Shown here: piece by piece, positions 2,495-3,778 of the stretch | How positions within the stretch are numbered: the first letter of the stretch is position 1 | Layout: every line of letters begins with the position of its first letter | IMG/VR virus record: IMGVR_UViG_3300008259_005066 | Location: 124,001 to 188,000 of that record | Direction: 5' to 3' (one strand) | DNA length: 64,000 bases | Notes under the pieces: model-generated | The model's input: only the letters and a program-made list of their open reading frames with translations | Databases searched by the model: none | What the model was told of the DNA's origin: nothing | Program-made: the position numbers and the translations under genes

Positions 2495-2501
2495 CGAGGT
2501 C

Positions 2502-2534
2502 AAAAAAAGAGGCACCTTTTTAAAGGGTGCCTCT
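2502..2534 (-). terminator. intrinsic terminator after AAA ATPase
   Basis: AGAGGCACCC-tttaaaaa-GGTGCCTCT stem followed by T-run on minus strand. Confidence 0.85.
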
Positions 2535-2585
2535 GTGAAACGGATCGCCTAGGAGCTAGACTATTTGATGGCGATCCGGGTAAAC

Positions 2586-3611
2586 TTATTCGTGTCGCAT
2601 GCAGGTATTCTCTGCTAGGGCTTTCCAGTTAGAACTGACTTTGGTCAAGTCTGCCAATTTCAGCGCCATGCGCAGACTGATCTCGCGCATGCGGGCATGG
2701 TTGTCCTGCATGAATTGGACAATCTCATCGCCCTGTTCGGGTGAGAAATCATAGTCCTGGAACAAGTCACCTTTGCGGAAGATCTGCTTGATGCGCAGGA
2801 TCTTGTCGCGGGTGGTGTTCAGCGTAAGGTCCAGGAAGTGACAGCGACTCTGCAAAGCCTCAAGATGATCTTGCAGTTTCTTGCTCTTGAGATGATCAAA
2901 CTTTAGATTGGTGATGAAAATCACCGAACCCTTGAAGTCGAACTGGTCAGGAACACCTTCACGGCGCAACATCGAAGAGTCTGAATTCCAATGGATACGA
3001 CGTTTTTTGCCCGAGTCCAGAGCGGCTTTCAAGATGTTCAGCGCGATGTCATCTAGCAGAATGGAGTCGCAGTCGTCAAACACCAAGACGTTTTTAGGGT
3101 CCGAATGTTTATACAAGGTGCAATACAATCCTATAGGAGTCATGGCACCTTTGATCACTTCATACTTGATCTTGCGACCGCTGATGTTATCAAACAAGCC
3201 GGCCTTTTCCAGTTGATACTCTACCCCGTAGGATTTGCCCACTCCAGGAGGGCCTGTGACAATCATGGCACGGATGTCGCCAGCGATGGCGGCCTTGGTC
3301 ATGTCGTCTAGGATCCCGAACCGTTGCTCAATACGATCCATGATTTCTTCGTCAGTTTCTTCAGGTTTTTCGGTCTTTTTAAATTCTACTACCTTGTTAG
3401 ATTGCGACACAATACCTCCGGTGATTTCGATGTCTTCGATAGAGTCTAGTTTAACACGGATCTCGTCAGGAAAGCCAGGAAAATTATCGCCGTTTTGCAC
3501 GGTTACGAAATTGCCTTTTGCCGAACTGGAGAAATCTTTCACTAGGGTGAAGTTGGTGTTCACGATGGGTTGATTGCGATACACACCGCGCTTGATGAGG
3601 ACTTGCGTCAT
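2586..3611 (-). CDS. AAA+ family ATPase
   Basis: Walker A GPPGVGKS, Walker B LVFDDCD, ALQSRC arginine-finger-like motif; SD AGGAG. Confidence 0.85.
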   Translation of the reverse strand: MTQVLIKRGVYRNQPIVNTNFTLVKDFSSSAKGNFVTVQNGDNFPGFPDEIRVKLDSIEDIEITGGIVSQSNKVVEFKKTEKPEETDEEIMDRIEQRFGILDDMTKAAIAGDIRAMIVTGPPGVGKSYGVEYQLEKAGLFDNISGRKIKYEVIKGAMTPIGLYCTLYKHSDPKNVLVFDDCDSILLDDIALNILKAALDSGKKRRIHWNSDSSMLRREGVPDQFDFKGSVIFITNLKFDHLKSKKLQDHLEALQSRCHFLDLTLNTTRDKILRIKQIFRKGDLFQDYDFSPEQGDEIVQFMQDNHARMREISLRMALKLADLTKVSSNWKALAENTCMRHE

Positions 3612-3643
3612 TGTCTAGGCTCCTTTTTTGTTACTATACCCAT

Positions 3644-3672
3644 ATTATAGCAAAATGGCTAATTCTGGTCAA
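3644..3672 (-). promoter_or_regulatory. sigma70-type early promoter (proximal)
   Basis: TTGACC-N17-TATAAT. Confidence 0.8.
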
Positions 3673-3749
3673 CCTGGGCAAAAATCCCCCATTTTATGGG
3701 TGTTGTTTTTTTGCCACAGATCTATTCTGCTAAAATTTACTATAATTGT

Positions 3750-3778
3750 ATTTTACGGAAAAAGGATTTTGTGGTCAA
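3750..3778 (-). promoter_or_regulatory. sigma70-type early promoter (distal)
   Basis: TTGACC-N17-TAAAAT. Confidence 0.75.

Follow-up and report, generated by a model that had tools for sequence, protein, structure and literature searches.

The mRNA of an AAA+ ATPase gene in an uncultured phage carries, between its stop codon and its terminator, an anti-SD, which is a short complement of its own Shine-Dalgarno (SD) region. The covariation of both partners in more than 100 distinct loci established that this pairing has very likely been maintained by selection. The gene is located in a stretch of 64,000 nt, hereafter called the window (positions 124,001 to 188,000 of the IMG/VR record IMGVR_UViG_3300008259_005066), for which the complementarity had been proposed in an earlier note made without database searches.

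Organization of the ATPase transcription unit

From sequence alone it is inferred that the ATPase gene forms its own promoter-to-terminator unit, as is typical for an early gene. The features, given in the direction of transcription and headed by an upstream promoter whose link to the ATPase unit is uncertain, are as follows:

3750..3778, minus strand: second sigma70-like promoter, TTGACC-17-TAAAAT
3644..3672, minus strand: sigma70-type promoter, -35 box TTGACC at 3672-3667, spacer of 17 nt, extended -10 box TG-n-TATAAT at 3649-3644
3612..3637, minus strand: 5′-UTR of approximately 26 nt, A-rich and unstructured, with the start inferred near 3637 from the position of the -10 box
3613..3624, minus strand: SD region AGGAGCCUAGAC, followed by A and then by the AUG at 3611-3609; 5′ partner of the putative long-range helix
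2586..3611, minus strand: ATPase coding sequence, 341 aa, TAA stop codon at 2588-2586
2541..2578, minus strand: 3′-UTR hairpin with a perfect 9-bp stem, 2578-2570 (CGGAUCGCC) with 2549-2541 (GGCGAUCCG)
2551..2561, minus strand: anti-SD GUCUAGCUCCU, within the 3′ half of the loop and separated from the 3′ stem arm by 1 nt
2502..2534, minus strand: intrinsic terminator with a 9-bp stem, a 9-nt loop and a U7 tract, 8 nt past the hairpin

The main promoter matches the consensus at 11 of 12 positions and has the TG element, and its -10 box was also seen in homologs at a distance from the AUG equal to that in the window. The hairpin begins 8 nt after the stop codon, with 7 nt in between, and has a loop of 20 nt (2569-2550). 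The complete 3′-UTR of the window gene comprises about 85 nt, and the distance from the SD to the anti-SD is about 1.05 kb.

The promoter at 3750..3778 could give rise to a longer leader or to a short transcript ending at a weak hairpin and U run at 3700-3680. At the other end of the unit, the T tract of the terminator continues into the sequence TTGACC at 2503-2498. Terminator-promoter cassettes resembling the T4 PeSL type were considered and dropped; the T-run/TTGAC junction is rare in this genome.

The encoded protein is an AAA+ ATPase and a homolog of T4 NrdC.10 that meets the membership criteria of the phrog_1250 group; a cellular function is not assigned. In a profile search residues 1-339 matched phrog_1250 with E = 2.7e-87, and the match to PF00004 was weak though above the cutoff of that family. 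The Walker A sequence GPPGVGKS is invariant among the aligned homologs, and the homologs in the phages VR5 and Acj9 carry the annotation NrdC.10. In the AlphaFold model (pLDDT 83) a beta domain at the N terminus precedes an AAA+ core; the model gave AAA+ matches at E ~1e-6, and its core resembles those of ORC/Cdc6, RFC, RuvB, CbbX and NorQ.

The window belongs to a single-contig phage genome of 209.5 kb with a GC content of 48%, and the origin of these phages is lake/freshwater metagenomes. DNA similarity to cultured phages was not found, and all protein-level matches to cultured phages were below 60% identity. A scan of genome contigs gave no host signal, as homologs were present only in MAG-binned contigs of many phyla. 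Metatranscriptome coverage of these uncultured phages is restricted to trace contigs.

Predicted pairing of the SD region with the 3′ loop in the window

The earlier note had placed the SD, the stem, the loop, the stop codon and a hairpin immediately before the terminator, and these features held at every position given. It had also claimed that the SD region and the loop pair over 11 bp with one bulged C, and this held as well: the duplex is composed of 5 + 6 bp, the bulged base is C3619 or C3618, and the calculated energy is -17.5 kcal/mol, versus -7.9 kcal/mol for the SD with the 3′ end of 16S rRNA. Folding of positions 2490-2600 yielded both the hairpin and the terminator, with an MFE of -35 kcal/mol and z = -3.9. 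When the loop was shuffled, -17.5 kcal/mol was attained by 1 of 20,000 shuffles (P = 5e-5), and with CUCCU held fixed the test gave P = 6e-4. By itself, the window duplex is borderline once the approximately 100 genes with a 3′ non-coding region are allowed for. The question of whether the complementarity is due to chance is settled by the comparative data described below, and not by the statistics of the window alone.

A genome-wide rule was not supported: for 99 genes with a 3′ non-coding region, the cognate energy was -10.3 kcal/mol and the non-cognate energy -10.4 kcal/mol. A scan of pre-terminator regions in this genome showed a mild excess of complements of at least 9 nt (3/91 versus 0.4%), the best candidate being an internal operon gene that looks weak.

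Distribution of the element among homologous loci

Three scans of IMG/VR yielded 241 loci with 59-86% protein identity, of which 226 were complete, representing 156 distinct UTR combinations. The heptamer test was performed with the 151 distinct loci having a GGAG, and the search extended to 400 nt downstream of the stop codon. Of these 151 loci, 92 had an exact downstream reverse complement of their own GGAG+3 heptamer, and 45 had that of their own 9-mer. The sense, reversed and complement controls were found in 0, 1 and 1 loci, respectively, and the reverse complement of the heptamer was never found in the coding sequence of the same locus. In 82 of the 92 loci a T run, the homologous terminator, follows within 110 nt of the anti-SD. 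Additionally, a bulged version of the element occurs in about 26 further loci, which make up the clade of the window.

In roughly 20% of the loci no anti-SD was detected within 400 nt, and T4-type homologs located inside operons have no anti-SD. The homolog EST35_0359 of the cultured Pseudomonas phage PA5oct has an 8-nt complement plus two G-U pairs in a 3′ hairpin.

The 15-mer of the loop is present in 45 viral contigs, 39 of them with the ATPase gene upstream on the same strand; among the others, three are cut by the contig end and three are isolated matches without a hairpin. In the clade of the window, the conservation of the loop exceeds that of its partner in the ATPase 5′-UTR, a difference that possibly hints at an extra constraint imposed, for example, by a protein or by another RNA.

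Covariation of the two partners

The base following GGAGC was Watson-Crick paired in 76% of the loci, versus 34% expected. The pair types were C:G in 41 cases, U:A in 40, A:U in 14 and G:C in 1, and the non-paired cases are nearly all within the bulge clade. On the tree of the ATPase protein the pair type switched at least 8 times. For 17 sequence classes with one representative each, the mean energy of cognate pairs was -14.6 kcal/mol compared with -11.9 kcal/mol for non-cognate pairs, and none of 10,000 permutations was as good. Duplex energies calculated for the whole 3′ region (cognate -16.4, non-cognate -15.3 kcal/mol) were rejected as too noisy on account of GC-rich terminators, and the analyses that replaced them took the SD core as their anchor.

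Changes of the SD core itself were examined in homologs of 48-60% identity, in which the following partners were found:

L299: SD side AGGAGCCAACC, 3′ element GGUUGGCUCCU
L301: SD side GGAGAGAGA, 3′ element UCUCUCUCC
L304: SD side GAGGGCA, 3′ element UGCCCUC, present in two copies
L311: SD side CAAAGGGGGC, 3′ element GCCCCCUUUG

The SD core is also altered to AAGGGGGC in distant homologs, with the 3′ loop altered correspondingly, and most of the 3′ elements of the distant homologs are located in a hairpin loop ahead of the terminator. No other single observation argues as strongly for the SD as the selected partner as does this covariation of its core.

Within the clade of the window, the bulged 5′ base varies (C, A or G) and the paired positions are conserved. 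In one subclade the bulge is on the opposite strand and the helix totals 13 bp, and others pair perfectly over 9-10 bp. In 21 aligned homolog 3′-UTRs, compensatory changes were present at 7 of the 9 pairs of the hairpin stem, and GCUCCUAG in the loop was invariant. The 3′ hairpin is thus shown by stem covariation to be a real structure.

The earlier note had proposed an alignment of homologous UTRs for covariation and had named a lack of conserved complementarity as a refutation. The alignment was done, the complementarity is conserved, and the refuting outcome was not met. The core idea of that note, namely that the 3′ loop pairs with the SD of its own mRNA, is supported by covariation on both sides in more than 100 loci, the SD core included.

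Position of the anti-SD within the transcription unit

Two layouts of the element were distinguished. In the first, which is that of the window, the 3′ half of the hairpin loop contains the anti-SD, with 1 nt separating it from the 3′ arm, and pairing with the SD results in a pseudoknot topology. In the second, the anti-SD is single-stranded, lies directly 5′ of the hairpin and 2-11 nt after the stop codon, and the topology is nested; an anti-SD at 2-11 nt from the stop was found in 28 loci. In both layouts it is possible that the long-range helix stacks on the adjoining stem.

Some loci contain an insertion of one or two small, often hydrophobic ORFs of 29-105 aa behind the ATPase gene. In these loci the anti-SD stays beside the terminator, 112-372 nt downstream and in two contigs 811 nt downstream, and it matches the SD of the ATPase gene and not the ribosome sites of the inserted ORFs. 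The anti-SD keeps to the terminator and to the SD of the first gene, and therefore the pairing joins the two ends of the transcription unit.

Folding of full-length mRNAs

For eight homolog mRNAs of the nested type (full-length, about 1.1 kb), partition function calculations gave a probability of ~1.0 for the core of the SD:anti-SD helix. The probability of GGAG being unpaired was 0.0, versus 0.11-0.62 after in-silico mutation of the anti-SD. Opening-energy (accessibility) calculations for these homologs were discarded as misleading; the ensemble already includes the 5′-3′ helix.

In the window, a bulge breaks the helix and pairing requires a pseudoknot; the model cannot form the helix and the hairpin together. 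Nested folding of the full window mRNA gave P = 0.27 for SD:loop. In every variant the SD was paired with the coding sequence, also in the anti-SD mutant, and full-mRNA modelling therefore does not discriminate in the case of the window. A simple estimate from hybrid and opening energies was about -10.9 kcal/mol net.

Proposed mechanism

In the proposed mechanism the ATPase mRNA would close on itself, the 3′-terminal anti-SD pairing with the SD region of the short leader. Of all parts of an mRNA, only the 3′-UTR escapes unwinding by translating ribosomes, and the anti-SD is moreover the last to be transcribed. As the anti-SD is made last and in a ribosome-free region, the nascent transcript would load ribosomes and the finished mRNA would mask its SD. 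The time for loading of ribosomes during synthesis would correspond to about 1.1 kb, or tens of seconds. Once formed, the helix of 7-13 bp (-17.5 kcal/mol in the window) is predicted to be much stronger than the pairing of the SD with 16S rRNA (-7.9 kcal/mol). The expected outcome would be a capped, time-limited yield of ATPase per transcript and probably also a faster decay of the closed mRNA. Ribosomes that load during transcription would escape the control, and the element would therefore not be a full off-switch. In a cell, ribosomes pass over the coding sequence but not over the 3′-UTR, which may be the rationale for the position of the element; this is inferred.

An action in cis that limits the translation of finished transcripts is the most economical reading and is favoured with moderate confidence; pairing in vivo, the action in cis and the lowered translation are all inferred. 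Action in cis and in trans cannot be distinguished from the sequence. The suggestion in the earlier note that full-length transcripts silence themselves, or that the 3′ end acts in cis or in trans, is likewise still an inference that rests on sequence evidence only.

A bolder reading, which is a sequence-based proposal and considered unlikely, is that the module is a sensor of ribosome traffic and not a simple damper. The anti-SD is located just past the last stop codon, so that only a terminating ribosome would melt the anti-SD or the hairpin, and each termination would free the SD for one new initiation. Translation would then rely on ribosomes loaded during transcription and would end for good when the mRNA empties. 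If true, the bolder reading would amount to a self-timing closed loop, by which the synthesis of an early protein is confined to nascent or actively translated transcripts. It is also possible that the 3′ module, beyond the favoured action in cis, acts in trans on other phage genes, to which the perfect complement of the loop at genome positions 85862-86479 points.

Alternative explanations

The alternative that survives best is a stable small RNA derived from the 3′-UTR, consisting of the hairpin and the terminator, which would target newly made ATPase mRNAs in trans as an anti-SD RNA, a form of delayed negative feedback, and possibly other phage mRNAs too. This is unlikely but cannot be excluded. 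The combination of a hairpin and a terminator resembles the layout of 3′-derived sRNAs, which speaks for the alternative, and the covariation is equally consistent with trans pairing to the same mRNA species. Furthermore, the ribosome site of another gene in this genome, at 85862-86479, has a perfect 11-nt complement of the loop; this complement reaches 17 of 18 nt when the 3′ arm is included, with -21.3 kcal/mol and, with the arm, -35.4 kcal/mol. The stronger conservation of the loop relative to the ATPase 5′-UTR in the clade of the window is also in its favour. However, the gene of the second target has no homolog in the records of five relatives, one of which is 99% complete, and the only occurrence of AGGAGCTAGAC there is that in the ATPase 3′ loop. 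The loop 15-mer goes together with the ATPase unit, a partner within the same molecule is present at a far higher local concentration, and no 3′ fragment is documented by RNA data.

A second alternative is that the 5′-3′ helix chiefly governs mRNA decay, either as an RNase III site as in icaR or by end protection as in hbs of B. subtilis. It is unlikely as the main role, although compatible with the preferred explanation. In most architectures the 3′ end of the anti-SD is 0-1 nt from the stem, and in the window coaxial stacking of 11 + 9 bp to a near-continuous helix of about 20 bp is geometrically plausible; cleavage of such a helix by RNase III is inferred. Published precedents exist for both variants (PMC3868564, PMC5737220). 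Against this alternative, it is invariably the SD itself that serves as partner, which suggests that ribosome access was the target of selection, and many lineages have helices of 7-9 bp, a short length for an RNase III substrate.

It is very unlikely that the two sequences are DNA-level inverted repeats instead of RNA partners, be it as recombination sites or as the ends of a gene cassette that is mobile or invertible. The repeats do flank the gene, the ends of a mobile element would covary too, and the region downstream of the gene is variable. However, the repeat always holds an SD at a working distance from the AUG and tracks the changes of the SD core. The repeats have just 7-11 bp, the promoter and the terminator lie outside of them and no recombinase lies inside, and the anti-SD is embedded in a hairpin with a covarying stem. 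Moreover, upstream synteny is kept, with a glycosyltransferase gene upstream in 47 of 80 loci, and the DNA contigs of three metagenome runs are collinear without strand-switch joints at the repeats.

Finally, the explanation that the reverse complement of the loop is the ribosome-binding site of an antisense ORF (AGGAGCTAGAC...ATG, 2551-2570, plus strand) is all but excluded: the plus strand does read AGGAG, 12 nt, ATG and an ORF of 16 codons, but an ATG at SD spacing is present in only 25 of 74 loci, the ORFs range from 1 to 131 codons without conservation, and the stem covariation favours an RNA structure.

Comparison with described systems

The nearest described case is icaR of S. aureus (Ruiz de los Mozos et al. 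2013). A 3′-UTR motif of this mRNA, UCCCCUG, binds to the SD region, with the result that initiation is blocked and a substrate for RNase III arises; whether it acts in cis or in trans is unresolved (PMC3868564). Common to both is a 3′-UTR anti-SD directed against the SD of the same mRNA species, and the criterion given by icaR, an anti-SD in the 3′-UTR of the same unit that is complementary to the SD, is met by the window. While icaR has a long 3′-UTR (the paper treats 3′-UTRs of more than 100 nt) and a complementary region of 40 nt (PMC3868564), the phage element has a 3′-UTR of about 85 nt and a helix of 7-13 bp. Also unlike in icaR, the phage anti-SD is found just ahead of the terminator, either within the loop of a hairpin or next to one, it belongs to a phage early gene, and its support is phylogenetic (more than 100 covarying loci) and not experimental. 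What is new is thus a short, hairpin-presented, terminator-adjacent and deeply conserved element borne by phages, whereas mRNA closure of the icaR type was already known.

In a 2025 preprint by Gill et al., anti-SD-like 8-mers located hundreds of nt from the ribosome site were described to pair with it, to inhibit initiation and to promote decay (PMC12697547). These were synthetic 8-mer substitutions in B. subtilis reporters, such sequences were depleted from natural genes, and three natural long-range cases were given (PMC12697547). As the reporters were repressed at long distance, a mechanism of the proposed kind works at such distances. In contrast to those sequences, the phage element is natural, positively maintained, structured and located outside the coding sequence.

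The earlier note had likened the element to type I toxin mRNAs. This analogy is loose, with end-to-end folding alone in common. In hok/Sok and aapA1/IsoA1 such folding keeps the full-length mRNA inert and the order of transcription matters, in which the phage mRNA would be alike. The products of hok and aapA are small toxic peptides, and each of these mRNAs has an antisense RNA as partner and becomes active only after 3′ processing. The 3′ fbi element of hok binds the extreme 5′ end of the mRNA, the SD being masked locally by other elements. The phage gene, by contrast, encodes a 341-aa AAA+ ATPase and has no small hydrophobic toxin ORF, and its SD is the direct partner proposed for the 3′ element. 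An antisense gene was not recognised, with no Rfam match and no convincing plus-strand promoter over the 5′ region.

The leader hairpins of T4 resemble the element in that a phage mRNA masks its SD by complementary RNA. In the leaders of T4 e, soc and I-TevI, the anti-SD lies a few tens of nt upstream, and a late promoter inside the hairpin bypasses it. In the phage mRNA described here the anti-SD is instead about 1.05 kb downstream, beyond the stop codon, and the criterion of the leader type is not met. A T4-like layout of local SD masking was observed at the gene at genome 85862-86479.

For hbs of B. subtilis, an interaction of the 5′- and 3′-UTR together with initiating ribosomes was found to control ribonuclease action (Braun et al. 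2017, PMC5737220). The UTR interaction of hbs is stabilising. Base-pairing of the two UTRs of one mRNA is common to hbs and, as inferred, to the phage element, with the difference that hbs was not described as SD pairing. Unprocessed T7 gene 1.2 mRNA was reportedly described in 1981 to pair its 3′ region with a ribosome site.

The view of the earlier note that this is not a described phage control element was upheld by the absence of an Rfam family and of a phage report in the literature searched. The sole match to Rfam was a chance match to sR42 (12.5 bits versus a gathering score of 38) inside the coding sequence.

Implications

For natural long-range 5′-3′ pairing in bacterial-type mRNAs only a handful of cases are known, and each of the three given in PMC12697547 rests on one organism. 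To our knowledge, 5′-3′ closure has not been reported before in double-stranded DNA phages, as far as the literature was searched, or with deep phylogenetic support. The phylogenetic depth provided here consists of more than 100 distinct loci, all four bases at the covarying position and a covarying SD core. The family offers natural compensatory mutants for the study of how helix length, bulges and loop presentation tune repression, and the compact 3′ module could find reuse in synthetic gene circuits. The proposed mechanism would explain why the element is placed in the only part of the mRNA that is not unwound by ribosomes. For the phages, the element suggests a cheap cis-encoded cap or timer for the output of an early gene, which would function without a dedicated repressor or nuclease.

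Complements of ribosome sites elsewhere in the phage genome

[quoted passage not shown]

L081:1363-1980 (genome 85862-86479), (-), 205-aa gene with a signal-peptide-like N-terminus
L081:1981-2050 (genome 86480-86549), (-), upstream region of the 205-aa gene

The ribosome site of this gene, CGCCUAAGGAGCUAGAC, is perfectly complementary over 11 nt (17/18 nt) to the ATPase 3′ loop together with its 3′ arm. The 205-aa gene also has an anti-SD of its own upstream, GUCUUGGCUCC, with which the ribosome site forms a hairpin locally (-17 to -20 kcal/mol). The loop of this hairpin contains the motif TAAATA, which recalls the late promoters of T4 that are sited within SD-masking hairpins.

Complements to the ribosome-site regions of two further genes (loci L296 and L297), likewise outside the window, were located just upstream of a downstream terminator, at distances of 1.25 and 2.5 kb, respectively:

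genome 189388-190488, (-), gene with a 9-nt complement to its ribosome-site region
genome 98709-99014, (-), gene with an 11-nt complement to its ribosome-site region

The first gene is internal to an operon and its complement overlaps a stop codon. The 11-nt match of the second includes the palindrome CCTAGG. It is conceivable that both complements are due to chance.

Promoters and terminator around the ATPase gene

Upstream of the main sigma70-type promoter of the ATPase gene, two additional features were identified:

window 3778-3750, (-), second sigma70-like promoter, TTGACC-17-TAAAAT, approximately 105 nt upstream of the main promoter
window 3700-3680, (-), weak hairpin and U run following the second promoter

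The second promoter may represent a tandem arrangement with a longer leader, or may give rise to a short transcript of approximately 60 nt. The main promoter segment (window 3631-3684) was found again in numerous metagenome contigs whose sequences diverge to either side of it, and this recurrence suggests a repeated promoter cassette common to several genes or phages.

At the other end of the unit, TTGACC directly abuts the T tract of the terminator (window 2498-2508, (-)), and the same junction is present in many homologous loci (TTTTTTTGAC); the end of the ATPase unit overlaps a putative -35 box of the next unit. Since the annotated GTG start (2515) of the downstream radical-SAM ORF falls within the terminator stem, the real start is probably located farther downstream.

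Homologous loci

Three IMG/VR contigs of 60, 104 and 316 kb (L275, L292 and L293) encode an ATPase 100% identical to that of the window. The size of the largest raises the possibility that the 209.5-kb record is incomplete or that a larger close relative exists.

In relatives including L215, L194, L178, L224 and L175, small ORFs are located directly past the ATPase stop codon and before the 3′ anti-SD module. The inserted hydrophobic ORFs comprise 29-37 aa (e.g. beginning MAWL), ORFs of 71-105 aa are present in other loci, and their start codons abut or overlap the ATPase stop codon.

The cultured jumbo phage PA5oct of Pseudomonas (L250) encodes a homolog, EST35_0359, with 47% identity over the AAA+ part. 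Directly past its stop codon lies a 3′ hairpin, the descending arm of which is complementary to AGUAGCAU, located between SD and AUG, and the match reaches into GGAG through two G-U pairs. EST35_0359 of PA5oct may offer a tractable model.
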